Position numbers and translations under genes: made by a program
Part shown: positions 17,011 through 63,540 of the stretch, in pieces
How positions within the stretch are numbered: position 1 is the stretch's first letter
Layout of the letters: each line of letters starts with the position of its first letter
Source of the DNA: Pocillopora damicornis
Lineage: Eukaryota
Reading direction: 5' to 3'
Length of the DNA stretch: 64,000 nt
NCBI RefSeq assembly: GCF_003704095.1
Contig: NW_020846071.1
Span: 1 to 64,000, forward strand
The notes under the pieces: model-generated
What the model was told of the DNA's origin: nothing
Databases searched by the model: none
Seen by the model: the letters and a program-made list of their open reading frames with translations, nothing else

Positions 17011-17247
17011 CTACAAGGTTTTTAAAAATTCCGTTCCGTTTCGTTGTCCACTGTTGTCTTCAATCCTGGTCCCATTTATGTATTGTTCTCTGTTGTTTTC
17101 CATCCAGGTCCCATTTACGTAAGGTTCTTCGTTGCCTTCCATCCCGTTTCCATTAATGTATCGTTCTCCTTCTACATCAGTGCTGTTTCGGCCAGCTTCA
17201 TAGTTGAGCCGCTTCTGTAGATCTTGGTATCGTTCGCGTCCAGGACG
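17011..17247 (-). CDS. Gene 2 terminal exon: acidic tail with 14-aa repeats
   Basis: Phase-0 exon of 237 nt matching the phase-0 vWA donor: [78 protein letters not shown]. Not in the ORF track because it has no start codon. Confidence 0.72.
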   Translation of the reverse strand, partial: RPGRERYQDLQKRLNYEAGRNSTDVEGERYINGNGMEGNEEPYVNGTWMENNREQYINGTRIEDNSGQRNGTEFLKTL

Positions 17248-20200
17248 CTATTAGTAGAAAACAGATTGCAACGATATTTACTTTTAGGACAAAGAAAACA
17301 GAGAAAAGGACACTATTCTGGGTTGTCTTTCTTGGGATGACCCGATTTGGATAATTTTGGCTCATTAAGATTACATGTTATTATGAAAGCGTGACCTTTC
17401 TACGATGTGTAAGGTTAAATTGAAGAACACGTGAAAGAAGTGAGGTACTCATGTATGGACAGCACGCTCGAGCTACGATACTGTTCAGGAATCTATCTCT
17501 GACTCCATGCTGTCGTACAAATTTTCCCTAGTTTACGGGTGTAATCCCCCTCCCCCAGTCATGAAAATAAACAGATAATGGTGAGACTGCCTCAGGAAAA
17601 AGGTTGCGTTGAAAGATGAGGAGGAAGAGGAGGGAAGATTACTCAGACTGGCCCCTTTTCCCATTTACCCAACAAAGTATTCGATAATCGTTGCAGCTAC
17701 TTTTTAATTAGTTTGGGGCGACAAGAACATTGTTGAAAGGTGAATTTGAAATTGAACCAAAATAATACTCTTCTTCCAGTTCTTTCAAGCACAGCACAGG
17801 TTATTAGACAACGACTATGAACCAATGAGATAAGAACTTGTAGACTTTTACATTTAAGCCTTCAATGTCTTCAACATCTACCTTCTCCATACAGTATCAC
17901 CCATGCATCAAACACTGAGCTCACGCGGATAAAATAAATAATTGCTTACTAAAACAGCTTTTAATTGTCAAACAAGTTTTCCTTGTCAGTAACATAGGAA
18001 AAATTCAGAGACAGAGTTTGGAGAAGATGCATAATGATTTTAAGATACAAAGGGAATAGCATACCATTTCCAGGTGTATAGCCTTAGCGATGGTACCCGC
18101 TCTAGCGACCAGGCTGCTGTACGAGCGAACCCTATACACGTGCCTGTTCCTGTAGGTAAAGGGTCGCAGGTATCGCTGATCAACATAACCAACTCCAATG
18201 ATAAACACCTTGACGCCATAACGCCTGAACTGCGACGGAAGCCTACTGATGAGGTAGGAGGATCTTGCAGTCTGCTTGCCGCTGACTACCACCACCAAGA
18301 CCTTTCGGATGAAAGAGAACATCTGCCTCCTTGCGAAGAAATATCGGAGACAAGCTTGTAATCCGAGATCGACTCGCCGACCGACTTGGTTTGGAAAGCG
18401 GATGTAGTTCAAGGCTCTGAGTACCAGACCTAACGAGTTGTACTGGTTCAAACGCATGCGCAGATGTGGCCGGCTTCCGTAAGTTGCCACACCAACGTGT
18501 GATTGGTACTTACTGATTGTGAAACGACGGGCGATCGACTTGATGAAGGCCTTCTCAAAGTGGAAATTTCTGCGACCGACATAGCGGGAGCCATCGATCA
18601 AGAAAGCAATATCAGCAGTAACACCGACGTGAGACACACCTGTTATACATGAAACATGAAATAAGCATCGCTTCATATTGACTCCTTGCTTTATCTCATT
18701 GCTTTCAAACATTTCACATCAAAGGAGAAGACTGAAAAAATACACGAGTGAATACTCACTTCCACCGGGTAATTTTGGCCGCACTGGTTTCGGACGCACT
18801 GGCCTGATTCGCCCTGAAAGCGAAAAAACACCAAACGATTGTAAAGAACCTACCTTAAAAGATACTCGAGAATGATGGATAAAGTGTAAGTTCACTGTTT
18901 TAGTGATGTATCAGCTCTTTTTCTCTTTCTCTATTCTTGTGTTCCCAAAAGTTACTCGGGTTGGTACAAAACAGAACGCACTTACGCCAGTGTCGCCCTT
19001 TCGTCCGGAATATTGTGTACGAGTCATAATAATATAAGAATTTCGGTGTAAATCCATTAACGTCCTTTAGAAAATTTTGCAATCTTATTGGCTGCACTAC
19101 TGGCTATCTATTCTGTATTGGATAGTAAGCATAGTGAGTAGCCTAAAAGTGTGCGATTGTAGAAAAACCAAAATAAGAACGTGATACTGTATCGTTGTTA
19201 CGTTTTGACCGACTATAAGATTAAACCGATACATTATTCACTCTTAATTTATGCCTGATAGTTGATCATCATTATCAGTGAATTACCATTCATACAATTG
19301 ATACATCTGCCTACTTAAAACTAACAGTTTTGCTATTATCGTAACGAAAGTCTTCCTTCGAATTTTCAACCTCTAGTTTCTGATCAATTCAAAATAACAA
19401 GTATGACAAGCATACTGGTTCAAATCAGCACACAGCTTTAGTTACTTACTGACGCAGTTGCCCCATTTCCTATCCCGATCATAGTTGGGTGTGATAGCGC
19501 ACCATCTACGGCTGTGGCGAGTTCTTGTGCAGCTGTTGTAACGACGGCCTTTGTAAATGAACGGAAACACACAGCAATGTCGGCTTGTGGTTCGTCTCTT
19601 GCAATATCCTGTTTTAAAGAAAGAGAATAACACCAGCTGTATGTCAGTTCTGAATAATATTAAACCTTTTCGCTCTAACATCAGTGTTCATATTCTCCAT
19701 ACTGTTTTCATTCATTTCCGAAGGTGTTGACAAGGAGAATGTGTTGAAAAAATCCATAGCTTCTCTAGTCAGTGATCATTTCCTCCATTCTTGTTACGTC
19801 AATGTTTGATTCAGAGGTGATACAGTGAGGCGAAACTACATTCTAATCACTTAGGGATTAAAGGGTTAAAGGGAAAAAAGCAGTTATGATAACCACTTAA
19901 TTGTAATGGGAAGCCCGAAGAAGGATAGACTAGAGCAAATAAACACACAAACAAACAAAAGAATAACAACAGCAAATTCCTCGTTAAAGCTGTATCACAT
20001 CATTTGCGACCGTGCTTGAAGCAGCTTCTACACGATATTGTGCAGAGTAGTTAACTTTCATATCAGACAGTAAGGGAGAAATGAATATCAACAAGAGACA
20101 AAGAAGGCAAATTTGAACAAGGACTGGTGGTACACACTCCAACAACATTGGCAAAAAAAAAATTCAGATGGACAGACCCTTACGTTATTTTTTTTCCAAA

Positions 20201-23200
20201 TCTACCATTTTCTTATCTTTACCGCATTGGATCGGTGTGCGAGAGATCGTAGGATGAACTCTTGTTAAGGCCGCACCAAAACCTTTTACACCCTAACATC
20301 AGTATGCATATTCTCCATACTGTTCTCTATACATTTCCTAAGGTGCTAACAAGGAGAATTTGTTTAACAATCAAGAGCTTCTTTAGTTGGTGATCATTTC
20401 TTTTATTCTCATGACCTTCATGTGTGATTCTGGGGTGATATTGTGGGGAGAAATTTCATGTTAGTCACTCTTAGGGTTCAAAGGGTTAATTGTAATTTAC
20501 TGTCTGTGAACAAGTTTTCAACACGTTAAAACTTACCTCTTACGGAGTAAACATCATTAGCCCAAGGTCCTCCCTTTCCATTCCTACACCTGTTGGATCG
20601 TCCATACCTCCTGTATGTCAACTGAGCTCTTCGACTTGTGGCGCACCATCCCTGATGTTGTACAGCGAACACACTGTATCCCCTTCTCATGGCCACCAAA
20701 GCGCATTTCGTAATGGCGTCTGCTCTTCTGCGGTAATAACCGTCGAGAATGGAATCTCGACCTTCCGCTGGTGGAACGGCACGTCGACTAGTATCACGGA
20801 AACATCCAATTGACTTGGCTGAAGAAGAGAGCATATATATTTAAAATAAATTTTCTTACACAGAGATGGAAGCAGAAGAGCGAACTGTCCCACAAAGAAA
20901 CTCGCTTACCGCTGACTCCGGTAGTGATTCGTATGGGTGGAGCTGTTGACGACAAAACAAAATGCAAGATCTTTAAGTTTGTGACGCCTACTTAACAATT
21001 TACGAAAGGCTTAAGCGCCAACAAGAAAGAAAGACCTTGGATACACTTAGACTGTACATTTAAAAAGTGAAGCATAGCTGAGTTTTGAATAACTTGCGTC
21101 TTTCACCAAGAGCCTCTGCAGGCCGTCAAAGACATATAAAGCGTAAGCGTGACTGAGATAAATACGAAAGGTTAGAGATAACTTTTGGGTCGGAGAGTTT
21201 GGATCTAAGGCTATACTCGAAAAGAGCTGGTGTCAAAAGAAATTAAATGAAGGCAAACGATGACCGCTTTAGAGAACTTATATAACGTGTTGTCTGAAAA
21301 TTAATAATTCTCAAACACGAGAAAGAGACAACACTGGACCTCCCAGGACAAAATTACTTGAAGTGCGATAATGAGCATTAAAAACGTCATTTTGTGTGGC
21401 AAACAGAGGAGGGAAAGACTCATAATTTATGTTTAAGCCCCTGAAGGGCGATGTGTTAATAAAATTCAAACCAGTAAATGAGCAAGTGAATTTTCTCACA
21501 TCTTTTTCCTCTGCAATATCCCCAGGCTGTTCCCCTTCGATATCCTCCAAAGGTGATTGGGCACCAGGGCCTTGTCTTTCCACGTCTGGTACACGAATAG
21601 TGTCTGCGCCCGCGGTATACAAACGGAAAAACGCAGCAGTGACCTCGAGTAGTTCTGTGACGACATGTTCCTAGAATAAAGAAGTATAGAAAATACAGAA
21701 AACCATAGCGAGATTCCAGGCTTTTTCAAATGGTTTGAACTTCAAGTTTCTAAGTTGTTATAGGATTATAAAAAAGCGTATCAGACTACTAAAGTGGTGT
21801 AACCCTTTCTAGCATGTCTTGTGAATTTACAAACCAACCTAATTCAACAAACTATCTAAGGAATAAAACACAATAAACGTAAAATTAAGGCGTGTATCTG
21901 TTGGTTGTTCTAGATTTTCAAGTGCAGTAAAACAAAATGGTGCATCACGTTTCATGCTTAACCAGTCAACGTTTATTGCCTGAGGGAGACTGGTACTACG
22001 CGGTCAAAACAGCAAGTGACACATTGAAGGACATTTGTTTAATTTTTGTTGCATTTGAACTGCGCTTTATGTACTTCAAAGACAAAACAAACCTGTGAAT
22101 ATAATGACCACTTGTGCAAATCAATTACCTGATACTCTGTAAACATCATTGGCCCAAGGCCCCCCCTTGCCATTCCTACACCTGTTGGATTTTCCATATC
22201 GAGCGAAAGTTCTATGAGCCTGCGGTCCTGACGCACACCATCCACCGTCCTGAACACCAAACACAGCGTACCGCTGACTAGCAGCAGTCAAGGCGCATAA
22301 TTTGATGGCATTTCTTCGTAGTTTATAGTTTCCTCTTAAGAGGCGACTTCTTCCGTCCATTTGTGGTATGGCCCGCCGAGCTGTGTCTCTATAGCAACCA
22401 ATTCTTTGAACTGAAAAGAAAAAAAAACAAAAGAAAAAAAACACGAGGTTTACCCTTAAATAATTAAAAAAACAAGGAGATGGTCATTTTTTTGTCCGTT
22501 GATTCAAGTGAAGAAAGATGTTATTCAGTGAATGGCAAAAGCATCACGCATGAAAAGAGAACAAAAAGGTTTCTCTGTCATTCACTGAATAATATCTTCC
22601 TTACAAAAATAAATCTCTACCAAAAAATTAAAATACTAGAATGAGCCTTTACCTAGAAATACGAACATTTTGTCGTGAGTTTATNNNNNNNNNNNNNNNN
22701 NNNNNNNNNNNNNNNNNNNNNNNNNNNNNNNNNNNNNNNNNNNNNNNNNNNNNNNNNNNNNNNNNNNNNNNNNNNNNNNNNNNNNNNNNNNNNNNNNNNN
22801 NNNNNNNNNNNNNNATATTATTATATATTTTACATATTATATTTCATAAAAATACTAGAATAAGCCTTTACCTAGACATACGAACATTTTGTCGTGAGGT
22901 TATGTAAAATTTAAAGGATATAGCTCGTAATCTTCAACAAGTGTTAAATAAAGAAAATAAAGCAACTTACTCCTTATTGAAGGTGTGACCTTTATAGGGC
23001 GTACTGCAATCAAAAAGACAGATCAACGTCAAATATTTGTCGCTTCTGATGCATAGCAAGTACAGACTTCCTATGCAGATAAAGACCAAAAAAATTTTTT
23101 TTTTCTCCGAGATCGACACAAAGACATCCCTAACCTCCTCGTCCTCCGCAAAATCCCCACAGTTTGTCCACGTCATAGTTTGGAGTGAGGGCGCACCATG

Positions 23201-26200
23201 GACGGCCTCTGGAGCGCACCCGGGAGCAGCGGTTGTAACGCCTGCCACGGTAAATGAACGGGAACACGCAGCAGTTCTGGCTGGTCGTTCTTGTTCTGCA
23301 GGAGCCTGAGACGAATTGAACCGCATAGATTCACTAGTGTACGCTAATCATATCCCGCTTTCTCTAAAATACTTCATGGGCTCATTCTTCGAAACATTAA
23401 GGAAATTTATGCCGGCATTTGTCAAGAACAAAACAAAAATGCGTCGAAATGGCCAGCATGTATAAAACTATTGTTACAGATGGGGCGTCTAGATTCTTCA
23501 ACTTCTTTGTTGATGTGCATAAAAGATAAAAAGGTGAACGTTTCGGAGATTGAATGGTACGGACAGAACAATGTCACGAAATAGTTCCTGCTTCCAAATG
23601 GACATTTCTATTTAGGACCATTAGAATTCTCTTAAAAAGCCGTAAATAATGTTTTCTCTGACCTCTCAAGACGTAGACATCATTAGCCCAAGGTCCTCCC
23701 TTTCCATTCCTACATCTGTTAGATCTTCCGTATCTCTTGTATGTTAAGTGTCCTGTCCTGGAAGCAGCACACCATCCCCCATGCTGCACTGCGAACACTC
23801 TGAAGCCTCGTTTTTGTGCAGCCAGAGCACATTTTCTAATGGCGTACTTCCGTCGACGATAACTTCCTTTAAGAAGACGACTTCTCCCTTCCAGTGGAGA
23901 TATGGCTCGTCGGCCTGTGTCTCTGAAGCAACCGATGTTCTTTGCTGTAAAAAAAGAAATGGAAAAATGAAGGATAAGATGAAAAATTAAGTCTTTTATA
24001 CTTTTATACTCCTGCAACTAACTGTCAAAGTGGATCTCAAAGGCGGATACAGAGAATTCATAAAAGGGAGGCCGGAAAATCGCGTCTGGAGAATAGACTC
24101 CCTCCACAACAGTAATTTCATAAACATCCATACAAGGTGCTTACAAAATAATTAAAAGTAGAGTGGCGAGTGCGCCCCCTACTTCCGTCTCTCCTACTAA
24201 ATACACGCTCACAAACCATAGGAAGCACGGACCTCGGTTCCTCAAAATATGGTACTTTCTTTAAATTTCTTTGAACTCGACATGCTCTGTCAGCTTTGCA
24301 TGTAGCAAACATACAGGCGTGCTTCACACTAAACGGAATAATTTCCATTGCGCAAAAGAATAAGTAACCTAATTACAACAAATATTTTCAGAGGGATACA
24401 AACCTCCTAACCCAACGGTGATTCTTACAACTGTTCCTGTAGACACAAATGAAAATAAGACGAATGAATTGCAAGATATTTGCACGAAATAAAGATAGTG
24501 AGGTGCACAGAGATGTTCCAAGTACAATTCTTACCTGGCCTTATTGGTCTAACCGGTTTTACAGGTCTAACCGGGCGACGTCCTGAGAAAAGATAAATCA
24601 AAAGAATTATGTTCTCGTTTCTTAACACAACTGTTATTGTGAGTAATCTTCACATTGATTTTAAGAAAATTGAACAAAAGCTGTAGCAGAAATCACCCCG
24701 ACCAATAATGGAGGAAAAGGTCGTTAAAAGCATTAAACCAAACTCTAAAGATATGTTGTGAAGCAAAAAAAATACTTTAAGTGTGAAATGATAAAAACTT
24801 CTTGGAGAGCTCTAATCTCTCGAGACCAATAATTTATTTCCTTTAAAAGTCAATTTAATATCCGGGAGAAAGGAAGTATAGCAGAATGTCAGCAAAGAAA
24901 TATTTTTTGATTCAAAATCAAATTCTCAGTACTTAAAATATAAGAAACGAATGGCAGATAATAAGGAGAACTTAAGTTCTTAGGGGGTAAAAGGATCTTG
25001 AACTTACCAGCACAGTTACCCCATTTCTTGTCTCTGTCATAGTTGCCGGTCAGCGAGCACCATGGACGATTGTGATTCTTTTTCGTGCAACTGTTATAAC
25101 GGCGGCCTTTATAGATGAACGGGAAGCTGCAGCAGTAGCGAGAGGTCGTTCTCTTTCGGCACCTCCCTACGAAAACAAAGCGAGAGCTGTATGAAACAGA
25201 CCCATAATAGGCGGTATAAGCACTGTTTTGTCTCATCTTACTTTCAATCGAATCGTCCGATCGTCCGGGCGAGAGTAGCCCCGAAAAGGATTGTGAATAT
25301 TACGAAGCGACAGTCTCTTTGGCCTCACCTTGAATGAAATACACGTCATTGGCCCAAGGTCCTCCTTTCCCGTTTCTACACCGATTGGATCGTCCATACC
25401 TCCTGTAAGTCAAGTGAGCTCTTCGACTTGTGGCGCACCATCCCTGATGTTGTACAGCAAAGGCTACATGACCGAGCCTCAAGGCAACCAGAGCGCATTT
25501 GTCAATGGCGTCGGCTCTTCTTCGGTAATAATCCCGGAGAAGAATATCTTTGCCGTCTATACCGGGAATAGCTCGACGAGCAGTGTCGCGCCAGCAGCCT
25601 CTTGACTTGACTGAAAATACATGTCAACATATTTTTAAGGTCAAAACTTCGCCTTTTGTATTTGTTTACTTAAAAATAAAAACCTGATGAATTTTATAAC
25701 GATGTCGCAATTATTAAGAATGAATCAAGATGAGTGAATGAAATGTTTCGTTCTAATTTTGTTAGCCCTAACAAGTCTAAACGTTTAAACTTATTACAAA
25801 TTAACTGACTGATCACTGTCGCCAAACACAATGAAAGCATTACGCGGGAGTATCAGATTTCTCTATTTGTTCTCGGTTTTCACAAAAAGTGGTATTTTAG
25901 GAGATAATCTATGATTAGGTTTAAATTATGCTCCAATAACATTTCGTAATAGGTAAGATTGCTACAAAGATGACTGTGTTGATTATCTCATAACGGAATT
26001 GTTCATGGTCATTACAATATTCCTTTAGAAATAAGTAAAAAAATTACATACCTCTCACTCCAGTTGTCACCTTTATTGGTTTGGCTGAAAAGATCAATCG
26101 TAAGACAATATATTTACCTTTTGTTAAAATTTATACAAATGCAATATAGAGATAAAGGTCAAGATCCAGCTTATGACAATAAGACGCCAAGCTGACAAGG

Positions 26201-53200: not shown

Positions 53201-56200
53201 CAAAATCTCATAACAGTTTCTTATTTGTAGAATGTTAGAGTTTCAAATTTGATACGGTACATCGCATGCGATACCAAAAGGTAACAAAACTAGCCAGAAT
53301 GCTGGCAGTGTTATAAGACCACAGTATTCTACTGTCAAAACATCCATAGCTATGCAACATATCCGACTGTGTGTACAAGTTTATCATGTAAAGCAAGGCA
53401 CTACGAGGCTGGTATACAGCACAGTATCATACGCACACCCACCTAAGACTAAGAACATGATTAAGAACCAAGGTAACCTAATTTCACAGTAAACACCATT
53501 TATATAAGATCCTATGGAGGCTAGCTCGAAAAAAACCTAGGTTCTTAAACGCGGGTTTTTACTGTATAAGTGTCAAATTCAGCATTAAAACAATCATGCT
53601 TTGGACTGTTAAAAACTAAGGTATGTGCTGAAAAAGGCAACAATAAATTCATTCTTACCTCTTAATGTTCTAGAGATGATTATAGGCCGTCCTGCAAGGG
53701 AAAAAAGAAAAACAATAGACACAGGTTGGAGTAACGTAGCCTTGAGGCCGCGTGCAATATTAGACTGAATATTTTTTACTTTCTCTCACCCACCAAAGGC
53801 GACAAAAGAGCGATAATAAGGATAATAATGCTAATAAAAATAATAACATCAGTGATAACACAAAACAATGATGAAAGGAAAACAAAGGGATTACTCATAA
53901 CCTTAGGGGATGCTTAAATCTTCAGATACAATACTCATAAACTTAACATGGGTTTTGCAGTTTTTTTGTTTTTTTGTTTTTTTTTTTACAATCTATCAGT
54001 GAAGAAATGATGGTGAGTTTCAAGTCATTAGGCTTCAGTAGGTTTCAACGAAATCGCAATATGACTGACCCTCTACGCAATGACGACCCTGGAGAAACGA
54101 ACGATATTTTTCAGCTCAATTATAGTCAAATGCGTGGAAAAGAGATCAATAAAATGAAAAACAAATCTAGTCCCTTAGTAATACAGCTATATCTTTTAAT
54201 ATAAATCATTCGCCTACCTCGTCCTCTACACCAGCCATACAGTTTATCTACATCGTAATTAGGTGTTAGTGCACACCAGGGCCGCCTTGAGTTGACTCGG
54301 GTACAGCGGTTGTATCGCCTTCCACGGTAGATGAACGGGAACACACAAATATTGCCTTTGGTTGTTCGTACACGAGGAGAGCCTGAAAAATAGGAGGTCA
54401 ACAGTTTCTCGGTGAAATCGCGTCATGAACAAAGTTAGAAGTGCAAAGTGAAGTGGTTAAGCAATGACTTTTTTAAAAATAGAAAATCTTTCAATTCCAA
54501 AAATAAAATGGTTTACAAAAGCACCTCTGAGGACATAAACATCATTGGCCCAAGGTCCTCCCTTTCCATTTCTACATTTGTTAGATCTTCCGTATTTGCC
54601 ATATGTTCGGTAGGCGTATTTCGTTGACGCACACCACCCCTGGTGCTGCACACCAAACACTCTGAAGCCTCGCTTCGCTGCCGCCAGGGCGCATTTCTGA
54701 ATGGCGTATCGCCTTCGACGATAATTTCCCTTAAGAAGACGGCTTCTGCCTTCCAATGGTGCTATAGCTCGTCGGCCTGTGTCCCTGAAGCAGCCAAGTC
54801 CCTTCACTGAAAGAAAACGTTAAAGACCAGTAACTATCGAACTGCTACTAAAAGGCCTTTATACGCTGTAAGGAAAAACTAAACCTGGAAAATCACCATT
54901 GGACAACTGTGAACTGTTTGGACCGTTGCTCACCGAACTTCGCTTCCAATTTACTATTGTCTTCGCAATTAGTGATAGCACCTTGACAGATAAGTAAGCA
55001 ATACAACTACAGTCTGGATATAATACCTCAGTTTTCAGAAGGACTCGTGTGTACTTAATCTACTTTCGCTTCAATTAAGTAGACTGACACTCTTTGAGTG
55101 TTACAACGAAATTTTACCGAAAGTGGAAGTCACACCTTGCTAATACACAGAGTTACACGTAAGAAGGAAACTGCACCAACCTTTCAATCCAACGGTGATT
55201 CTGATCACTCTCCCTGTAAGGAATAAAAGTATTTTGAGTCACCGCGAGGGAACCGTCAGTTCTACCCCTGCCTTCAATTTCACCATGGAAAGTGAAGAAC
55301 ACAAGACAGAAGTCAAGCATCCAAGAAGTTCACTTAATTGGTGCACTTTGAGCCTTTTTTCTTCATTTTTTGAAAAGAGCCTGGCACAAGAGGAGACTGA
55401 AACATGACAGGGAAAACACAGGGTGTGTCACGTATCTCAATCCAGTCCCTTCCCGTCCAGACCAAAGTTCTGCTTTCACTTTCCCTCCATGCTCGTTAAC
55501 AAAAAAACAAAAACAAAAGAAGGAGAGGAAAATACCGATTACTAGAAGTCTAATTTACTGCTATTAATAAAAGCTGGAATAGCTGCTAGAGCTCACCTTT
55601 GTATGAAGGAACAACTGGACGAACAGGTCTGACAGGCCGGCGTCCTGTGTAGCGTTTAAAACAAATATTTCATCAGTATTAAGTCATGTCTAACAGATAG
55701 ATGTTAATGTAGAGGAACGCAAGCATTGGATATATAAATTAGCACTGAATAATCAGGTAAATTAAAACACAAAAAAGAAAAACAACTAAAAGAGTGAATT
55801 TGGATTGGAACGAGGAAATGATATTTCTTCTTGTAAAAGGTCTAGTTTTCATCTTAACATATTTATCCAAACAAACTAGCGGAGGATACTAAATGAAGGG
55901 TAAGGATAATGTAAATTTGTGAACAAATCAACAACATTAGTTCTCTCGTTCGTCACAATGAATCCCTTCTTTAATAATTTTCATAACTTTATTCAATATC
56001 TGGTTGTTAGAACAACGTTTCTAATTCAGTGCTCCCTGTTCACAGCCTAAAACTTACTTGCACAATTTCCCCATTTCTTGTCTCGATCGTAGTTGGGCGT
56101 CAGAGCACACCAAGGTCGTTTGTGGTTCTTCGATGTGCAGCGATTGTAACGACGTCCTTTGTAGATAAATGGGAATGCACAGCAGTAGCGCGAGGTAGTT

Positions 56201-59200
56201 CGTTTCCTGCATGATCCTACAGGTGAGAGTTCAAAAGTAACGGCACGAATGATATCTCAAGTCGAATAAAGTCACGCTCCATAAAAAGTTACTCATATTA
56301 ACATTTAGTAGAGTAATATCAACCATATTAAGTCATGTCAAAGTACACGTAGGGTCGGGAAACGAAGTTAATTTCATATCAGGTAAAGTTGTGTTAATCT
56401 GTCACACCATGTCACAACATGTCCAGTCATATCAAGGTCACGTTCTGTTACGTAACGCATTTTCACCGATAGAGTCGTGTTAATCTATGACGTCATGTCA
56501 CTGTTGAGGTCACGTTGTGTCATGTTACGCATATCTGGTAAGTTAATTTAAATCTGTTAAGTCAATTCATGACATGTAAAATTATGTAGCGCAGTTTCAC
56601 TCAAATCAGGTTAAGTCATGTCCATTCATGTCAAGTCGAGTACTGACAAGTCATGCGCCACAATTCCTGTGCTCTCACCTCGAATAAAATACACGTCATT
56701 AGCCCACGGGCCACCTTTGCCGTTCCTACATCGATTGGATCGTCCATACTTCCTGTAGGTCAAGTGAGCTCTTGGACCTGTAGCGCACCATCCCTGATGC
56801 TGAACGGAAAAAGCCCTGTAGCCACGTCTCGCTGCAGCTGCGAAGCACTTGAAAATGGCGTCGCTTCTTCTTCGGTAATAGCCGCGGACAAGAAAATCTT
56901 TGCCATCCATTTGTGGAATGGCTCGACGGCCAGTGTCTCGCCAACATCCAGCAGGTTTAACTGAAAAGAGAACAGGAACCACTCCATGTAAAAGTTAATG
57001 ATTAGTCCTTAGTGATTTAACCCTTCCACTCCAAAGAGTGACCAAAGAGAATTTACTTCTAACAATATTCTTTTATTTTCCAGCAGAAAGGTTATGACAA
57101 GAAATTTTACCTGGATTTAAAATCAAATTCTCGGAGCTAAAATGATTACAGATATATGGAGGAATCTGCAGAGAATTTGTATTTAGATCTTGGCAGGGAA
57201 AAGGTCAAGGGTCAAAAGAGGTGAGATCAGAGTTCATTTTTGTACAGTGTGTCTTACGAGTCTATAGTTTCTCGACTAAAAATCCAAAATTTATCCGAGA
57301 ATTTCTTTTTAACATAAATATAAAAAAAGAAAGAGAAAGGTGGCCATACTTACGCAAGACATTAGGTGTTACCCGGATTGGTCGAGCTGTAAAAAACAAA
57401 CGCAAATAAAACGTAACTAACTTTCACAAACAATACACGTATCTTTTCAAATTTTTAAAATGGCTGTCGTAAAGCGCGCAACTGATCCATCTTGTCCGTT
57501 GTGTGGGGCGCCTTTTTACTTTGTTAGTTATTATACCTATGGCTATAAGGTTTTTTAATTGTTTTCATCAATTTGTTGTCGTTCAATTGTAATAAATAGA
57601 TGAAAATAGACACAAATAGATATGAATGTACGAACTTACGGCGTGCTCCACCCCTACAGTATCCCCAAAGTCTCCGTCTCTTATAGTCCGGAGTTATATA
57701 ACACCAACTTTGTCCCCGTTTATTCTTGGCGCAACTGTTGTATCGGCGCCCGCGGTACACGAAAGGAAACGAACAGCAGTAACCTGTGGTAGTGCGATAT
57801 CTGCACTTTCCTAAAATTGAAACACATCACTGACAATAAGAATCTTTCACTAGAAAACTCTTATTATTCAACACTATCATTTAGTTCACTTTTATCTCTT
57901 ATTTTTACTTTGCCCTATGCGTTTTTTAGTTTTTCGATTTTTCTTCACAGAACTTTTAGTTTAATCATGAGTGATTCCTAGATTAACTACATCTAGTTTC
58001 AAATCACCAGCGACCCTTACAATCGGATTGGCTATCAGTTGAGCAAATTTTTTTTAATTACGAATCGCTCTATTTTTTTTGCTCCAAATCGTCTCCATTT
58101 CTCAAGCCAATGAAATAACAACAATGAGGAGCTGAAGACAAAACAACCAATCACATTCCAAGGTTTGCTAATGGTAACCAATCAAATTGCAAGAAAACGA
58201 AAGACAATGAAGCCATTGTGTGGCAACTTTGCAACTTTTGTCCCCAAATCACGAGTATGATTTCCGACCAAACTGCATTCCACTCAGTTCAGTTACCATT
58301 GCGAAGAACCAGAGAAAACGAGAAGGAATGATGAAATAATAGAAAAAAAAAACTCAAGTAGATATTCTGTAAAAAATCACTTCACCTGAGATCCTGTAGA
58401 CATCATTTGCCCAGCCACCTCCCTTTCCATTCCTACAACTGTTTGAACGGCCATACCTGGCATAAGTGAACTGGGCACGGGGTCCTGAAAAACACTGACC
58501 ACCATGTTGGACCCCGATGTACTTGTAGCCAAACCTGGCAGCATCTAAGGCGCATTTCTTTATGGCAAAGCGACGTTTTTGGTAGTTTCCCTTCAGAAGG
58601 ATACTTCTGCCTTCACGGTAAGGGATGGCTCTGCGAGATGTGTCTTTAAAGCAGCCGACTCTTTGGACTATAGACGAAACGAGACACAAGGGAACACTTG
58701 CATTGGTTCTGATTTACCATGTTATAGTTTGTCGAGAGAACTCGCTAAAGCTTTCATCCAGTTAACTTTTTAACTAAAACAAGTTCCGCCTGAGTAGAAT
58801 ACTTTTTTTTGGGTTGCGTTCCTATAATTCCTCTCAATACCTATACGCTGCTTGTGACATTGAACTTTGATAAGGTTACCTATTGTGGTTACCAAGCTTC
58901 CGGAGTTGTTTTAACCCCCCTGTCAAAAAGTGCTCTGATAGGCTCCAAATGAAAAAAAATATGTAGTGGCTAATACGACTGACAAGTGTAACACTAACAC
59001 AACCACTCTGGCAAAACACTAAACGAAAGAAGGACTAGCAAGATATTAATAGCGTTACTTACGTGTTACTAGCGGTGTGACCTTGATGATAGGAGCTGAA
59101 ATTGAAAAAAGAAAACGCAGATTAAAACTAGTAATATTTCTCTCACAGAGTTTTAAGAACTAATTTACAATTCTCTCACATGCAAACAAACAAACCAATT

Positions 59201-60367
59201 GAGATACCTTAGTTGTTTGTTCGTACGATGTATCCTATTCTTTACCACTTAAATAAAACGAAACCGGATACATTAAAGATAACAATCTATTTCTCACCTC
59301 CTCGTCCTCGGCAGTAACCCCACAATTTGTCCACGTCATAATTTGGAGTTGAGGCACACCATGGACGACGGTTTCTAGAATTGACCGTGGTACAGCTAGT
59401 ATACTTTCGGCCCTTGTAAACGAACGGGAACACGCAGCATTCACCACGGGTTGATCGAACTCTGCAAGACCCTGACGTCAAAGGCAAAAAAACTCAATAT
59501 AGTGAGAGTGTGTCGCACTACGGCAATTGAGTGTCGGGATCACATTGACATTGTTTTTACGGCCCCGTCATTGGTTAACTTCTCAGCCAATCGGCTTCAA
59601 AAATTCAACCAAAAGCACAAGAATCTAAATTTGGTTCACTTAATTTTTGCAAGAAACTGTTGATATGAACTATGCTTAAATAAAAATAGACAAAAGAAGT
59701 AAACAAATTTTTTCCAAATATGTTTTTACAAAAATTTCCACATGATATGCATATGCTATAAATCAACTTGAGGTTGACAGGTTTCTAGCAATAAAACATG
59801 AGGGTTACAAAAACCAAAGCCATCTTTACCTCTTAAGACGTACACGTCATTAGCCCAGGGTCCACCCTTTCCATTCCTACATCTGTTAGATTTCCCATAT
59901 TTGGCATATGTACGATAAGCGTGTCTAGCAGAGGCACACCATCCGCCATGTTGGATTGCGAATACTGTGTAACCTCTCCTCTTTGCCGCCAGAGCGCATT
60001 TCTGAATGGAGTACTGCCTTCTGCGGTAATTTCCTTTAAGGAGACGACTTTTGCCTTCCAACGTTGATATGGCTCGTCTTCCTGTGTCCCTGAAGCAGCC
60101 AAGTCCTTTAGCTGATTAACAAAAACGACGAAAAAAAATCAGTATTTTACGAAACAAAAAATCACGTATATATGTCAAGGGAAATTACAAAAAAGCCTTT
60201 AAGGAAAGAGAAGTACATGTTTAACGTGGTTTTGGACCCAACGGTACAAGGTAAACCAACTACATAGACATGTTGTGCAAGTTCATGCAAGAGAATTTTA
60301 ATAATTTTAGTTTGACTCACCCACTAAAACCACTGTGATGCGGATTACTCGTCCTGGAAAAAAAATA

Positions 60368-60399
<32 letters not shown>

Positions 60400-63300
60400 A
60401 TAAAGTTTAAGCTGAGAGATTTAAATCCACTATATGTATAAACTATTACAACAATTCACTTATTCATAAAGCTGCTACAATGATTGGAGCAAGAGCCTAA
60501 ACACAATATTGTAAGCTATCACAAACTTATCATAAGCTATAACTGATTATTAGTGACAATATCAAAAAAAAAATTATGTGTACCATGCAAAAAGTACCTA
60601 ACAACTGTACTCTTTACAGCTAATTTAGTCCATTCAGCCAGCACACATGATCCAAAAAAAAGAAAAAAGAAAAAAAAAAAGAAAAAAAAAAGAACAATGG
60701 GCAAAGTTGTAAACAGCTCATATTCTAGAAATGGAATGTACGAAAGACTTCAATTCAGATAGAAGTTTACTTTTTTATCAAATATGAAAAGGTACTGCGA
60801 CACTTACCTCTAACTCGTGGTACAACAGGTCGGACTGGTTTGCGACGTCGGCCTAATGTAATGGAAAAGGATTCAAAGTCTCATGAAGGATTTGATGGTT
60901 TAAAGGGGACTCACTGCTAATATTAAGCTATACAGTACGTTTATTATTTAGTGTTTCTCACTAGAGGCTCAGGTAAAATTAATTTCTGAAGAAAAGTGAA
61001 ATAGCCTGTATTCATCAATATTTTCTGGGTCTCCTCTGATGTTAATCACTCAACTCTGATAATGACTTCGACTAAGGTTGTCAGAACATCAGTCACTTAA
61101 CTATCCACGATAGTCCTTCTCAGGACAACTGTCAGCCAGACAATCAGACTGCACAACTGCACAATTAATTTAAAGTATTTCAACACATACACCATAAGTA
61201 GCTGGTTTATGATAAAACTTACATTTACAATTTCCCCATTTCTTGTCGCGATCATAGTTGGGTGTCAGAGCACACCATGGTCGATTGTGGTTTCTTCTTG
61301 TACAACTGTTATAACGACGTCCTTTGTAGATGAACGGGAATGCACAGCAGTAGTGATTTGTGACCCTTCTTCGACATTTACCTATAAAAACAAATTTTTA
61401 TGTTATCCTATGAAGATAATTATCCCATATATAAAAACGGTTTAATACAATGGTATTCATTTTTTTTAAACCTACCAGAAACAAAGTAAACATCGTTTGC
61501 CCATGGACCACCTTTGCCATTCCTACATTGATTGGATCGTCCATACTTCCTGTACGTCAGGTGAGCTCTAGGGCCTGTAGCACACCATCCCTGATGTTGA
61601 ACAGCAAAAGCTCTGTAGCGTCGCTTGGCAGCCTCCAGAGCACATTTTGCTATGGCATCACTTCTTCGTCTATAGAAACCACGCACAAGAAGGCCTTTTC
61701 CATCCATTTGTGGAATGGCTCGGCGACCTGTATCTCTGTAACAGCCTCGGGATCGAACTGAAATACAAGAAGTATCAAAATCAATTCACATTTGGAGAAA
61801 GAAACAAGAAAACAGACAGATCTTAGTGATGTTAATTAGCAGAATAGTAATAATCATTTAAATCAAGTACCACTTATTTCATTTGGCATCACTCGGAAAA
61901 TAATTACAGTACAGTAAATACTAAAAATGTGCAAGCATGATGTGACACAAAAGCAAATAACAAAACTATCAAGTTACTTACTCACAACTCCACTGGTTAC
62001 TTTAGTTGGGGGAGCTGGTGGGGCAAAAGAATTTGACAAGCATTAGCAACACTGCAGAAAAAGTAACTAACAATTACCTCACTTTGATCAAGTCTAATGT
62101 TTATAGTATATCTTCATTAATACCTCTGTAACCACGGCAATATCCCCATTGTTTGCTCCGAGGATAATCTGGTGTAGTTGGACACCATGGCCGCCCACTC
62201 CTTGTTTTTGCACATCTATTGTAACGGCGTCTACCATAGGTGAATGGGAACACACAGCAGTAACCAGATGTAGTTCGTTTTCTGCATTTTCCTAGCAGAA
62301 AAGAAACACAAAACATTTCCTTTGGCTAACTGATCAAATCAGGGAAAAAGGGAAAAAATAAATTATACTACTGTCATTCCACATTCAAATACTGCAAAAA
62401 AAGCAACAAACAATGACAGCATTGGAAAACAAAGAAATACGTAGGAAAATTGATGATTATCATTAAAAGCAACCATTGTCTTCAATGTTGGTTATGTAAA
62501 TACATATTTTTTAAGATGATATATTTTTTAAAGAGCAATGAAAAGTAAATGAATTGGTCAACTTCTCAACACTTGTAACTACTTGCTACTTGAAAAGATT
62601 TCATCAAAATTTCTTGTAAACTAATAAATGAATATATTATACTTTCCAACATTCAACCCTTTAACTCCTATGAGTGATCAAGAAAGAATTTCTCCTTACA
62701 ATAGCAATACAAGATAGGTGATGAGAATCAAAAAAAAATATAATTTAGGGGATTCTAACATGATCCAATATAAAATTTTCCAACTAACATCATAAGAGTT
62801 GTAGACTGTAAGGAGAATTACTAATGAGATGTGAAAGTGAAAAGCCTAGGTAATATTATGTACATTTGATATTTCAATCGAACTGGAATTTATATAGGCA
62901 AGTTTGCCAATTTGGAAACTGGAAATTTCACCAAACACAGTCTCACCTATAATCCTGTAAACATCATTAGCCCAAGGTCCACCTTTGCCATTCCTACATC
63001 TGTTTGATCGGCCATACTTAGCAAAGGTTTTGTGAGCCCTCGGTCCAGATGCACACCATCCGCCATCTTGGATTCCAATGAACCGATAGCCACGCCTTAC
63101 AGCTTCATAAGCACATTTTTCAATAGCTTTTCTTCGGCGCTTATAGTTTCCTCTTAACATAGGACTTTTACCATCTAGTTGTGGGATGGCCCTACGCCAT
63201 GTATCCTTAAAACAACCAATTCTCTGGACTGAAAAAAGAGGACAAAAGAAATGTGTTTTGTTATGTTATATTATAATATTAGACCAAAAAATTAAACAAA

Positions 63301-63540
63301 ATTTGACATGGACAGACTGCAAGGAAGCTTTTGGTTTGACCTAGATTCAGTTTTTGATCACTTACTAGCATATTATCAGTCTGTCATGAAAACTTTTTTC
63401 ACTCTTCTAATAGTACCCTTGACAAAAGTCTGAACTGCATTCTTATTACACAAAGTATTATCAGCCACCACTATCATCAGTTTAGAATTTGGTTTATAGA
63501 CACTTACGTCTCAGGGGTGGTGTGAGTCTTACTGGACGTC
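17011..63540 (-). CDS. Giant cationic modular extracellular protein (5'-partial): tandem [micro-exon linker - WSC-like - FN2] repeats, vWA domain, acidic tail
   Basis: 87 visible exons in one consistent frame. All repeat exons are phase 1-1 with GT/AG ends. 26 WSC-like exons (24 complete at exactly 282 nt, 2 cut by a gap), 25 FN2 exons (159-174 nt), 25 micro-exons of 30-36 nt, 9 Pro/Arg-rich micro-exons, a vWA exon and a terminal exon. No start codon or signal peptide in the window, so the gene continues beyond 64000. Confidence 0.88.
18065..18639 (-). CDS. Gene 2 von Willebrand factor A domain exon
   Basis: [48 protein letters not shown]...KVLVVVVSG...[10 protein letters not shown] is a typical vWA pattern. 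575-nt exon, phase 1 to phase 0. Confidence 0.9.
18760..22410 (-). CDS. Gene 2 higher-order repeat 9 (partial, A and B only)
   Basis: WSC-A 22129-22410; FN2a 21500-21670; micro 20910-20942; WSC-B 20537-20818; FN2b 19450-19608; Pro-rich 18760-18813. Confidence 0.85.
19660..19869. mobile_element. MITE family 1 copy
   Basis: Shares ctaacatcagt..catattctccatactg..acaaggagaat..aagggttaa with 28356-28567. Confidence 0.7.
20279..20489. mobile_element. MITE family 1 copy
   Basis: Near-identical to 28356-28567; ends aagggttaa. Confidence 0.72.
22971..27461 (-). CDS. Gene 2 higher-order repeat 8
   Basis: WSC-A 27180-27461; FN2a 26451-26618; micro 26052-26084; WSC-B 25329-25610; FN2b 25008-25166; Pro-rich 24535-24582; micro 24404-24436; WSC-C 23663-23944; FN2c 23135-23305; micro 22971-23003. 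Confidence 0.85.
27732..31244 (-). CDS. Gene 2 higher-order repeat 7 (interrupted by an assembly gap)
   Basis: WSC-A 30981-31244 (truncated); gap; WSC-B 30635-30880 (truncated); FN2b 30106-30264; Pro-rich 29960-30007; micro 29789-29821; WSC-C 28996-29277; FN2c 27995-28162; micro 27732-27764. Confidence 0.82.
28356..28567. mobile_element. About 210-bp MITE with TTAA-CCCTT...AAGGG-TTAA ends (piggyBac-like non-autonomous), family 1
   Basis: Terminal inverted repeat ttaaccctttacacc...ggttaaagggttaa. Close copies at 19660-19869, 20279-20489, 34533-34743 and 38775-38979. Confidence 0.75.
30881..30980. other. Assembly gap (100 N); other gaps at 350-503, 22685-22814, 32044-32053, 44325-44365
   Basis: N runs. 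Confidence 0.99.
31850..35684 (-). CDS. Gene 2 higher-order repeat 6
   Basis: WSC-A 35403-35684; FN2a 35027-35197; micro 34900-34932; WSC-B 34215-34496; FN2b 33794-33952; Pro-rich 33479-33520; micro 33335-33367; WSC-C 32842-33123; FN2c 32465-32632; micro 31850-31885. Confidence 0.85.
34533..34743. mobile_element. MITE family 1 copy
   Basis: ttaacctttacacc...aaggattaa, with a homologous internal sequence. Confidence 0.68.
35818..35890 (-). mobile_element. Degenerate tRNA-derived SINE head
   Basis: The reverse strand reads agctcagctaaaagcatcggtccacgaaatccgagtgtttcgggtttgattcctcg, with A-box and B-box-like motifs at tRNA spacing but no intact cloverleaf. A related fragment lies near 42560-42600. 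Confidence 0.4.
36022..41416 (-). CDS. Gene 2 higher-order repeat 5
   Basis: WSC-A 41135-41416; FN2a 40005-40175; micro 39804-39836; WSC-B 39149-39430; FN2b 38556-38714; Pro-rich 38415-38465; micro 37916-37948; WSC-C 37282-37563; FN2c 36627-36794; micro 36022-36054. Confidence 0.85.
36180..36336. mobile_element. Short MITE with nested internal palindromes
   Basis: Ends ggctccggttgt...acaactgggcc. Internal ggataac/tatcc and ccagata/tctgg hairpin units. Confidence 0.55.
36371..36535. mobile_element. Second copy of the palindromic Penelope-like remnant
   Basis: gtaaattggccaccgt...acggtggccaatttac inverted repeat, and the same tail (tcaactc..gataa.accaaatta...caccacag/taccacag) as 2567-2770. 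Confidence 0.6.
38775..38979. mobile_element. MITE family 1 copy
   Basis: caccctaacatcaatatgcatattctccatactg...aaagggtgaa. Confidence 0.68.
40833..41078. mobile_element. About 245-bp MITE-like element (possibly hAT-derived)
   Basis: Ends ggggttcatac...ttcgaaccctg. Repeated internal ttcaaggacttt/ttccaggacttt units. Confidence 0.45.
41523..41554. repeat. 8-bp tandem repeat (AGGCTTAC) x about 4
   Basis: gggcttacaggcttacaggcttacaggcttac. Confidence 0.8.
42065..46737 (-). CDS. Gene 2 higher-order repeat 4
   Basis: WSC-A 46456-46737; FN2a 45861-46028; micro 45616-45648; WSC-B 44685-44966; FN2b 44077-44235; Pro-rich 43880-43927; micro 43645-43677; WSC-C 42859-43140; FN2c 42279-42446; micro 42065-42097. 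Confidence 0.85.
46195..46385. repeat. Local direct duplication of about 95 bp
   Basis: ccccctttgtatctttgttggcgacgaatgatcctcctccgttccc...aaaatcttccacccc is repeated as cccctttatactctgttggcaacgaatgatcacccttccgttccc...aaaatccttccacccc. Confidence 0.6.
46848..47056. mobile_element. MITE family 2 copy
   Basis: Homologous to 3776-3987; ends tcaaccctttaact...agttaaacggttca. Confidence 0.65.
47297..53099 (-). CDS. Gene 2 higher-order repeat 3
   Basis: WSC-A 52818-53099; FN2a 52327-52497; micro 51610-51639; WSC-B 51061-51342; FN2b 50267-50425; Pro-rich 49872-49913; micro 49655-49687; WSC-C 48643-48924; FN2c 47789-47956; micro 47297-47329. Confidence 0.85.
48343..48537. mobile_element. Related TTAACCCTT-type MITE (diverged); similar elements at 57017-57208 and 62653-62847
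   Basis: About 200 bp with ttaacccttaagagtga...aaagggtta ends and the same layout as families 1 and 2. Confidence 0.55.
48982..49313. mobile_element. About 330-bp MITE with imperfect TIRs
   Basis: Left end ggagtttgagaaacaacggcggcgacg versus reverse complement of the right end ggagcttcagaaaaccccgacggcaacg. Confidence 0.6.
52050..52292. repeat. CCAATCA-rich interspersed repeat; related pieces at 45290-45482 and 40640-40716
   Basis: Shared ccaatcag...aaaacc...cccgcgctt and attgg...actttgg...acactcaa blocks. Confidence 0.4.
53108..53566. mobile_element. About 460-bp element with 27-bp terminal inverted repeats (Tc1/mariner-pogo-like MITE)
   Basis: Left end tagtaaaagtccgcgtataagaaccta; right end taggttcttaaacgcgggtttttactgta (reverse complement tacagtaaaaacccgcgtttaagaaccta). 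A CAGT terminus with flanking TA is typical of this superfamily. Confidence 0.65.
53659..58667 (-). CDS. Gene 2 higher-order repeat 2
   Basis: WSC-A 58386-58667; FN2a 57640-57810; micro 57354-57386; WSC-B 56679-56960; FN2b 56058-56216; Pro-rich 55597-55644; micro 55181-55213; WSC-C 54525-54806; FN2c 54218-54382; micro 53659-53691. Confidence 0.85.
58000..58300. repeat. Interspersed repeat also present at 63585-63990
   Basis: Shared blocks ac(c/t)ag(c/t)gacccttRYaat..gattggc and aagacaaaacaa.caat. Confidence 0.45.
59063..63540 (-). CDS. Gene 2 higher-order repeat 1 (plus the last micro-exon of the preceding unit)
   Basis: micro 63508-63540; WSC-A 62947-63228; FN2a 62124-62291; micro 61982-62014; WSC-B 61476-61757; FN2b 61223-61381; Pro-rich 60808-60852; micro 60321-60353; WSC-C 59830-60111; FN2c 59298-59471; micro 59063-59095. 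Confidence 0.85.
60370..60400. repeat. (CAAAA)n microsatellite
   Basis: Directly visible. Confidence 0.8.

Follow-up and report, generated by a model that had tools for sequence, protein, structure and literature searches.

The minus strand of the Pocillopora damicornis window (the whole 64,000-nt stretch analysed here, which opens contig NW_020846071.1) carries most of a single giant gene whose product is probably a secreted polycationic scaffold, predicted to bind polyanions and collagen and so to cross-link matrix, a reading that we rate somewhat above even. The gene spans at least 52 kb and ~95 exons, and the predicted product has ~4,800 residues. Literature searches by domain combination, accession numbers and locus names turned up no work on this protein, and no characterised protein with its architecture was found. 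A preliminary description of the sequence had put it forward as a candidate undescribed protein, which holds as far as characterised proteins go, but GenBank and RefSeq do contain fragmentary or ‘uncharacterized’ models for Pocillopora, Orbicella, Stylophora and Nematostella.

Exon architecture of the array

Hidden Markov models built from the exons located 27 WSC-like and 26 FN2 modules between contig positions 19450 and 65344, in the strict alternation that had been proposed; all are on the minus strand, with none on the plus strand. A 27th FN2 exon is hidden in an assembly gap. The units fall into nine super-repeats of three unit types (A, B and C), with a clear period-3 pattern and unit-to-unit differences of 12–45% at the protein level. 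The WSC-like exons are 282 nt each (n = 27). Each FN2 exon has a linker exon of 30–36 nt after it, and every third one has a Pro/Arg exon as well. At the 3′ end a Pro/Arg linker leads into a vWA exon, after which the protein ends in an acidic tail that contains N-glycosylation sequons. The 5′ end lies beyond the window and comprises one more unit, a gap-cut Kunitz exon and a candidate signal-peptide exon. The features are as follows (W, WSC-like; F, FN2; L, linker; P, Pro/Arg; contig coordinates past the window).

60321–63540, minus strand: super-repeat 1, in-window part (HMM matches, splice sites, phases)
Unit 1, minus strand: L 63508–63540; past the window, W 65063–65344, F 64225–64389
Unit 2, type A, minus strand: W 62947–63228, F 62124–62291, L 61982–62014
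Unit 3, type B, minus strand: W 61476–61757, F 61223–61381, P 60808–60852, L 60321–60353
55181–60111, minus strand: super-repeat 2
Type C, minus strand: W 59830–60111, F 59298–59471, L 59063–59095
Type A, minus strand: W 58386–58667, F 57640–57810, L 57354–57386
Type B, minus strand: W 56679–56960, F 56058–56216, P 55597–55644, L 55181–55213
49655–54806, minus strand: super-repeat 3 (Pfam scans of 54460–54819 and 54129–54422; borders of W 54525–54806 read directly)
Type C, minus strand: W 54525–54806, F 54218–54382, L 53659–53691
Type A, minus strand: W 52818–53099, F 52327–52497, L 51610–51639
Type B, minus strand: W 51061–51342, F 50267–50425, P 49872–49913, L 49655–49687
43645–48924, minus strand: super-repeat 4
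Type C, minus strand: W 48643–48924, F 47789–47956, L 47297–47329
Type A, minus strand: W 46456–46737, F 45861–46028, L 45616–45648
Type B, minus strand: W 44685–44966, F 44077–44235, P 43880–43927, L 43645–43677
37916–43140, minus strand: super-repeat 5
Type C, minus strand: W 42859–43140, F 42279–42446, L 42065–42097
Type A, minus strand: W 41135–41416, F 40005–40175, L 39804–39836
Type B, minus strand: W 39149–39430, F 38556–38714, P 38415–38465, L 37916–37948
33335–37563, minus strand: super-repeat 6
Type C, minus strand: W 37282–37563, F 36627–36794, L 36022–36054
Type A, minus strand: W 35403–35684, F 35027–35197, L 34900–34932
Type B, minus strand: W 34215–34496, F 33794–33952, P 33479–33520, L 33335–33367
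29789–33123, minus strand: super-repeat 7, gap-broken
Type C, minus strand: W 32842–33123, F 32465–32632, L 31850–31885
Type A, minus strand: partial W 30981–31244; FN2 and linker hidden by N-run 30881–30980
Type B, minus strand: partial W 30635–30880, F 30106–30264, P 29960–30007, L 29789–29821
24404–29277, minus strand: super-repeat 8 (same exon chain, with its linkers, in GenBank RMX41951.1)
Type C, minus strand: W 28996–29277, F 27995–28162, L 27732–27764
Type A, minus strand: W 27180–27461, F 26451–26618, L 26052–26084
Type B, minus strand: W 25329–25610, F 25008–25166, P 24535–24582, L 24404–24436
18760–23944, minus strand: super-repeat 9
Type C, minus strand: W 23663–23944, F 23135–23305, L 22971–23003
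Type A, minus strand: W 22129–22410, F 21500–21670, L 20910–20942
Type B, minus strand: W 20537–20818, F 19450–19608, P 18760–18813 leading into vWA
18065–18639, minus strand: vWA exon (acceptor phase 1, donor phase 0; Pfam VWA 1.6e-26)
17011–17247, minus strand: last coding exon (phase-0 acceptor; 78 codons and stop 17011–17013)
Contig 66647–66809, past the window: Kunitz exon
Contig 69051, past the window: ATG of candidate first exon
22685–22814: N-run, intronic (super-repeat 9)
32044–32053: N-run, intronic (super-repeat 7)
44325–44365: N-run, intronic, between W 44685 and F 44235 (super-repeat 4)
30881–30980: N-run, coding disrupted, sequence across the gap not continuous (super-repeat 7)

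The proposed array proved real, but most of the short linker exons had been missed. Direct F-to-W splicing is phase-compatible, but was ruled out by the linkers present in Orbicella and GenBank proteins, and after that comparison a linker exon was located in every F-to-W intron. All 85 complete repeat exons have lengths divisible by three, 1-1 phase and AG/GT borders, and all are free of stops, as are the junction codons, which were checked one at a time; none has a start or stop of its own. Such symmetric exons would permit many isoforms.

The coding N-run (30881–30980) takes 18 nt off the end of one WSC exon and 36 nt off the start of the following one. The reading frame differs between the two flanking halves, and the period-3 register carries on unbroken across them; the run must represent ~0.9–1.6 kb with one FN2 and one linker exon.

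Repeat modules and charge

Searched singly, the FN2 exons score 43.5–70.7 bits against fn2 (PF00040; Pfam cutoff 22.2). Across a 22-exon alignment, and in alignments with MMP-9 and MMP-2, whose gelatin-binding repeats are the closest solved relatives, they keep the four cysteines and the aromatic core F-P-F, Y, W-C, Y-D and W-G-x-C. Individual copies depart from this pattern: F 35027–35197 lacks one canonical Cys, and F 45861–46028 is a divergent ‘CVPF’ variant (fn2 6.5e-12). The FN2 exons also have an extra N-terminal Cys pair, jointly lost in three of 26 copies.

Fold comparison, and not sequence search of the PDB, identified the other module. Single exons reach only 16.6–21.8 bits against WSC (PF01822), under the Pfam cutoff of 27.8, while whole multi-copy proteins reach 86–89 bits. 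FN2, vWA and Kunitz exceed their Pfam cutoffs; WSC, per exon, does not. The module has four invariant cysteines (C5, C38, C58 and C77), as opposed to eight in the canonical WSC domain, and a search of the PDB with the exon profile gave no meaningful match. An AlphaFold model of the exon (pLDDT 83.4) shows the WSC (PAN/apple-like) fold: its best Foldseek matches are the WSC domains of Kremen and a glyoxal oxidase, together with yeast Wsc1 (TM 0.56–0.66, probability 0.77–1.0, but E-values of only 0.04–0.2).

The chain is ~23% Arg+Lys, with abundant Tyr, Trp and Gly. Among 4,386 counted residues there are 284 K, 743 R, 127 D and 37 E (K+R 1,027 vs. D+E 164), and summing per exon gives a net charge of ~+860 at pH 8.1, in line with the several hundred positive charges first estimated. 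The hand counts of K/R against D/E behind that estimate were exact, at 23 vs. 3 for W 54525–54806 and 14 vs. 2 for F 61223–61381; K+R makes up 25% of the FN2 exons.

The two ends of the protein

The gene continues beyond the window, with a further W exon to contig 65344, the Kunitz exon and, probably, the initiating ATG at contig 69051. The Kunitz exon scores 77.9 bits (PF00014; cutoff 21) with Arg at P1; the first of the six Kunitz Cys would fall in the N-run at contig 66810–66909, where the exon is cut. RNA contigs extend into this gap at contig 66810. The gap separates the Kunitz exon from the candidate first exon, which has a hydrophobic core, good Kozak context and canonical splice sites, and whose three canonical joints all come from a single RNA contig with 20–21-nt sides. 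A clear signal peptide is present in the Nematostella orthologue XP_032243311.2, and every domain type in the protein is extracellular. To judge from these sequence features, the coral product is probably secreted, with its candidate signal peptide at contig 69051.

At the other end, the proposed vWA cap is borne out by the exon at 18065–18639, which scores 94 bits (PF00092; cutoff 23.8). Its closest solved relatives are the vWA domains of collagen VI (alpha-3 N-domains). The MIDAS motif, D-x-S-x-S, is incomplete: corals have D-G-S-R-Y, without the second Ser, and Nematostella has D-S-S-A-K, which makes metal-dependent binding of ligands unlikely. We rejected the vWA exon as the last exon, in a model that ran on until a stop close to 18006 and had an ATTAAA signal, because RNA-derived ORFs join it to the exon at 17014–17247. 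The RNA-derived ORF P0209 (98% identity) and Stylophora XP_022782082.1 both carry this joint, and the order F-linker-vWA is found in relatives P0215 and P0329 too. The acidic tail is rich in Asn and contains four N-x-S/T sequons as well as repeats of the YING type.

A single expressed gene under purifying selection

The gene is expressed and spliced at both ends. Poly-A RNA from three studies contains the joints from Kunitz to a 32-nt exon, to a WSC exon and to an FN2 exon; the W-to-F joint of unit 1 is seen in RNA contigs as the loose end at L009 1062. Poly-A runs contain 0.17–0.21 of the words of 54001–64000, where the exon share is ~0.27. The array is under purifying selection (pN 0.17 vs. 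pS 0.67; dN/dS ~0.13, with silent sites saturated).

These data bear on whether the locus is instead several short genes that are independent of one another, a repeat array in decay or an artefact of assembly. GenBank annotates only the 3′ third, as one 1,501-aa model, and the region holds four N-runs, as might be expected if it were not one gene. Against this stand the repeat exons, all phase 1-1 with canonical sites and without starts or stops of their own, the RNA joints that connect neighbouring exons at both ends, the low dN/dS with its saturated silent sites, and the Orbicella and Nematostella models, which span many units. Nor are the units collapsed or duplicated reads, since they differ by 12–45% at the protein level. 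We find this alternative barely credible and read the locus as one giant, expressed gene.

Orthologues in corals and sea anemones

Orthologues occur in corals and sea anemones under the name ‘uncharacterized’. The sole GenBank model of the P. damicornis locus, RMX41951.1 (pdam_00020940), is a 1,501-aa fragment that covers units 20–27 only, contains spurious stretches and fuses two half W exons across a gap. A word-indexed search for full-length coral models with a W-F fragment gave mostly single-exon ORFs from genomic contigs.

In Orbicella faveolata, XP_020631660.1 (2,711 aa, N-terminally incomplete) shares the W-F-linker units, vWA and tail, but has four Kunitz domains among its last units. 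From Pocillopora unit 13 onward, the units of the two species are matched one-to-one as orthologues at a constant offset, with Pocillopora unit 14 pairing with Orbicella unit 2 (100/97 support) and units 16 and 17 with units 4 and 5. Unit types B and C form supported clades that include Nematostella units, and all three types are present in Nematostella.

The Nematostella vectensis orthologue, XP_032243311.2 (LOC5517416, 7,958 aa), is 60% identical over the C-terminal vWA and tail. Like the coral protein it contains the three polycationic WSC-like unit types, FN2 and Kunitz domains, with K+R of 20.6% vs. D+E of 4.0% and a net charge of +1,324. It differs by an additional vWA at the N terminus, ~16 discoidin domains and about 30 divergent copies of the WSC-like module; its FN2 domains number only 12, and the alternation is not strict. 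We found no neighbour common to the coral locus and the Nematostella gene; in the Nematostella v1 assembly an Atg4-type peptidase lies upstream, and nothing recognisable was found within 10 kb downstream. A skeleton-specific protein is unlikely, as non-calcifying sea anemones carry the orthologue.

Comparison with known proteins

The modules are known from matrix proteins, but not known in this arrangement. The WSC-like module has its best structural matches in Kremen1/2 (Kringle-WSC-CUB) and yeast Wsc1, which share 15–18% sequence identity with it and are membrane receptors or sensors with a single 8-Cys domain, no arrays and no positive charge bias. The Kremen WSC domain adjoins a kringle, a fold related to FN2. 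The gelatin-binding FN2 domains of MMP-2, MMP-9, fibronectin and PDC-109, the closest solved sequence relatives, have their canonical Cys and aromatic positions kept here, but occur in two or three copies as opposed to 27. Tandem 4-Cys WSC-like arrays exist in uncharacterised proteins of amphioxus (XP_078580859.1; 5,602 aa, 38 copies) and Styela clava (XP_077968393.1; 5,975 aa, 57 copies), yet these have no interleaved FN2 and net charges of only +126 and +422. Matrix proteins of the collagen VI, matrilin and cochlin type share the vWA domain, whereas the coral protein has no collagen helix, a single C-terminal vWA and an incomplete MIDAS. Database names of the fragments include ‘collagen alpha-1(XIV)-like’ and ‘cochlin-like’.

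Proposed function and alternatives

As we envisage it, the product would be a long beads-on-a-string extracellular scaffold, ordered as candidate signal peptide, unread gap stretch, Kunitz domain (Arg P1), 27 units of WSC-like domain, FN2 domain and short beta/Pro linker, then Pro/Arg linker, vWA and a short, acidic, N-glycosylated tail. Polyanions such as acidic glycans and poly-gamma-glutamate may be bound multivalently through charge and lectin-like WSC modules, and collagen-type partners through the gelatinase-type FN2 modules and collagen-VI-type vWA; such dual binding would cross-link matrix. We infer this polyanion- and collagen-binding function from the domains and charge; simple electrostatic attraction, however, is strongly screened in seawater.

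The most likely site is, putatively, matrix secreted by cnidocytes, or the mesoglea. Two Nematostella genes, NvvWFA-WSC (NV2.21576) and NvFnt-1 (NV2.24355), appear in a table of cnidocyte-expressed ECM genes in the Nematostella matrisome (PMC12549020), and either could be the Nematostella orthologue and so a candidate cnidocyte lead. NV2.21576 has no Swiss-Prot match; it is one of three vWFA paralogues in a row, which disfavours it as the orthologue. A more specific version, tentative and with a modest chance of being right, is a hexacoral-specific, position-coded polycationic scaffold of stinging or adhesive capsules (nematocysts or spirocysts), whose 27 individually conserved units would lay down or neutralise capsule polyanions (poly-gamma-glutamate, chondroitin) along minicollagen structures; if true, it would be the first protein partner for capsule polyanion chemistry.

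The extreme abundance of Arg/Lys, the plentiful Tyr, Trp and Gly and the Arg at the Kunitz P1 would also suit a defence polymer of surface mucus or gland cells, or a wet adhesive, in which the polycation agglutinates or permeabilises microbes or glues to substrates while the Kunitz domain blocks foreign proteases. WSC-domain proteins are reported from milked sea-anemone venom or mucus, with no function attributed (PMC6627431), but FN2 and vWA are typically matrix binders rather than antimicrobial parts, and one-to-one long-term conservation of 27 units is unusual for a fast-evolving defence molecule, leaving this role unlikely. The small WSC proteins of anemone venom (PMC6627431) fit a polyprotein precursor too, cut at basic linker sites into many small cationic WSC-FN2 proteins, as do the regular units, the short linkers and the Arg-Arg with which these begin after every third unit. 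Dibasic sites, however, are absent from most linkers, the units are orthologous position by position and not interchangeable, and the vWA cap and tail suggest an assembled whole. Pro follows the basic pairs, moreover, and makes a poor convertase context. We regard such processing as very unlikely.

If the matrix-scaffold reading holds, the protein is among the most highly charged large proteins described (~+860 in the coral, +1,324 in Nematostella), and its 27 units have each been retained separately since before the split of coral families, which points to a length- or position-dependent job and not to bulk charge alone. As the gene is split or truncated in public annotation, expression atlases and proteomes probably under-report it. 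The presence of an orthologue in the genetically tractable Nematostella makes polycation-polyanion assembly in cnidarian matrices and capsules directly testable.

Architecture of the array

The array of alternating WSC-like and FN2 modules with a vWA domain, proposed in the preliminary description, was confirmed: stop-to-stop translation and two exon-built HMMs place 27 WSC-like and 26 FN2 modules in strict alternation on the minus strand (contig 19450–65344). The window covers bases 1–64000 of the 102,970-base contig, and one further unit lies directly past its end. The same translation and HMM scan found no WSC-like or FN2 module on the plus strand or in the remainder of the contig's first 74 kb. 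Every WSC-like exon is exactly 282 nt long and FN2 exons range from 159 to 174 nt, both with a pyrimidine tract and AG upstream, GT downstream and phase 1-1 throughout. Because linkers were visible in Orbicella and GenBank proteins and absent from our first gene model, linker exons were then located, and are of two kinds: 30–36 nt exons of the type x-P-I/V-K/R-I/V-T in each FN2-to-WSC intron, and Pro/Arg exons of 42–54 nt after each third FN2 exon. The 85 repeat exons that are complete all have a length divisible by three, AG/GT borders and no internal stop, nor is there a stop at their junction codons.

Runs of N interrupt the locus as follows:

22685–22814, intronic
32044–32053, intronic
44325–44365, intronic
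30881–30980, cutting two adjacent WSC exons that lie in different frames

Elsewhere in the array, the points corresponding to the two flanks of this last gap lie 0.9–1.6 kb apart, so its 100 N represent a longer stretch with one FN2 exon and one for a linker; the register of three units is maintained across the gap.

Gene ends and transcripts

The 3' end of the gene reads, in order of transcription:

19450–19608, minus strand, last FN2 exon
18760–18813, minus strand, Pro/Arg exon
18065–18639, minus strand, vWA exon
17014–17247, minus strand, final exon, with the stop at 17011–17013

The vWA-to-tail joint is present in an RNA-contig ORF (98% identical), and the order FN2-linker-vWA-tail also occurs in relatives. 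The 5' part continues beyond the window (contig positions):

66647–66809, minus strand, Kunitz exon, entering an N-run
65685–65716, minus strand, 32-nt exon between the Kunitz and WSC sides
65063–65344, minus strand, WSC exon, joined onward to an FN2 exon

The splices from Kunitz through the 32-nt exon and WSC to FN2 are seen in poly-A RNA contigs of four runs, which come from three studies. Farther upstream, three small exons with canonical sites are joined in one RNA contig, the first having an ATG at contig 69051 in a favourable Kozak context and opening with a hydrophobic stretch; it is a candidate signal peptide exon, separated from the Kunitz exon by an assembly gap. The candidate 5' UTR (minus strand, contig 69052–69316; 5052–5316 in L009, the sequence beyond the window) holds a 51-codon upstream ORF ending 10 nt before the proposed ATG. 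In one RNA run (X6), a plus-strand GT..AG joint from L009 4654 to 5011 overlaps this exon, possibly reflecting an antisense transcript. Upstream, a plus-strand 244-codon open frame with ankyrin-like repeats (L009 7874–8605, contig 71874–72605) is probably the next gene and marks an outer bound for the 5' end. On the other side, a convergent plus-strand neighbour (window 4283–16038) has calcium-binding EGF-like and sushi-like exons, a 4.1-kb exon (10212–14330) encoding Ig domains (Pfam Ig_3, 1e-24) and a long coiled-coil-like region, and an apparent transmembrane segment and cytoplasmic tail.

Domains and charge

All FN2 exons score above the Pfam cutoff (43.5–70.7 bits), and the one exon compared with the PDB was nearest to the repeats with which MMP-9 and MMP-2 bind gelatin. 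Two extra N-terminal FN2 Cys are both gone in three copies and singly gone in none, a sequence pattern that suggests a third disulfide. One copy (35027–35197, minus strand) has Pro at the second canonical Cys position, leaving the partner Cys unpaired, while its Orbicella counterpart retains that Cys; this is either a genuine loss or a sequencing error. The WSC-like module has four invariant Cys rather than the canonical eight, and single exons score 16.6–21.8 bits, below the Pfam cutoff of 27.8, which multi-copy proteins exceed. Its AlphaFold model (pLDDT 83) best matches the WSC domains of Kremen and glyoxal oxidase and yeast Wsc1, and 'WSC-like' is therefore the proper term. The vWA domain resembles collagen VI N-domains and has an incomplete MIDAS motif, and the Kunitz P1 residue is Arg.

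The two earlier hand counts of K/R against D/E were exact on recount. Over 4,386 residues we counted 284 K, 743 R, 127 D and 37 E, giving a net charge of about +860 at pH 8.1 that is still positive at pH 12, along with 295 Tyr, 102 Trp and 446 Gly. The sole acidic part is the 78-residue tail, with four N-glycosylation sequons.

Evolution of the units

Identity among WSC units is 72–76% at spacings of 3, 6, 9 and so on, versus ~62% at other spacings; the array thus consists of nine super-repeats of three unit types (A, B and C), each super-repeat comprising ten exons. Between units, silent sites have reached saturation (pS 0.67 versus pN 0.17; dN/dS ~0.13). In a tree that took in Orbicella, Nematostella and Actinostola units beside those of Pocillopora, types B and C formed supported clades with units of all three cnidarian genera having full models, and individual Pocillopora units formed pairs with individual Orbicella units, the numbering always shifted by 12. 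It follows that the array is old and free of concerted evolution, its units having been individually kept. The final three WSC-FN2-Kunitz units of an Orbicella protein model (P0329, residues 1802–2384) are mutually identical; they either arose by very recent triplication or are an artefact of the assembly or of the model.

Orthologues and the module family

The C-terminus of the Pocillopora damicornis GenBank protein RMX41951.1 (pdam_00020940, 1,501 aa) agrees with the window; its model is limited to units 20–27 and joins two half exons over the gap into one. The Nematostella orthologue (XP_032243311.2, 7,958 aa, net charge +1,324) has a signal peptide and a vWA domain at either end, along with 42 WSC-like, 12 FN2, ~16 discoidin and 2 Kunitz domains; that of Orbicella (XP_020631660.1) has 2,711 aa, and that of Stylophora (XP_022782082.1, 'collagen alpha-1(XIV) chain-like') represents the tail only. 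Database names are generic for all orthologues. The Nematostella gene spans ~60 kb (L010/L011, DS469536.1, about 448–508 kb) downstream of an Atg4-type peptidase gene, and in the 2007 annotation it is broken up among numerous short 'predicted proteins' (EDO45366, EDO45370, EDO45378 and discoidin or FN2 fragments).

The 4-Cys module is widespread (2,519 matches at E ≤ 0.001). In the Pocillopora genome, where the family is strongly expanded, a WSC-like exon has at least 105 matches, many of them elsewhere and grouped into separate arrays at 40–59% identity (contigs C4228, C4335, C2867, C3313, C1114 and others). Giant arrays in amphioxus and Styela are purely WSC-like, without FN2 and with far lower charge than the coral protein. 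Two of these, P0001 (amphioxus, 5,602 residues) and P0151 (Styela clava, 5,975 residues), consist nearly entirely of 38 and 57 4-Cys copies, respectively, and some such genes have dozens of RefSeq isoforms. These uncharacterised proteins make up a second class of giant WSC array, as yet unexplored.

A proposed scaffold

Given the domain set, conserved charge and strictly maintained unit number, we propose that the protein would act as an extracellular multivalent scaffold binding polyanions and collagen-type partners. Localisation to cnidocytes is no more than a lead: capsule and venom proteomes contain WSC proteins, and two Nematostella matrisome entries, either of which may be the orthologue, are both listed as cnidocyte-expressed ECM genes. 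Neither entry could be matched to the Nematostella giant gene, and one seems to be a different gene. The earlier interpretation of an adhesive, matrix or defence polymer is partly supported. The giant polycation, which is uncharacterised and strongly conserved, arranges known modules in a new way, and its gene is under-represented in public annotation.
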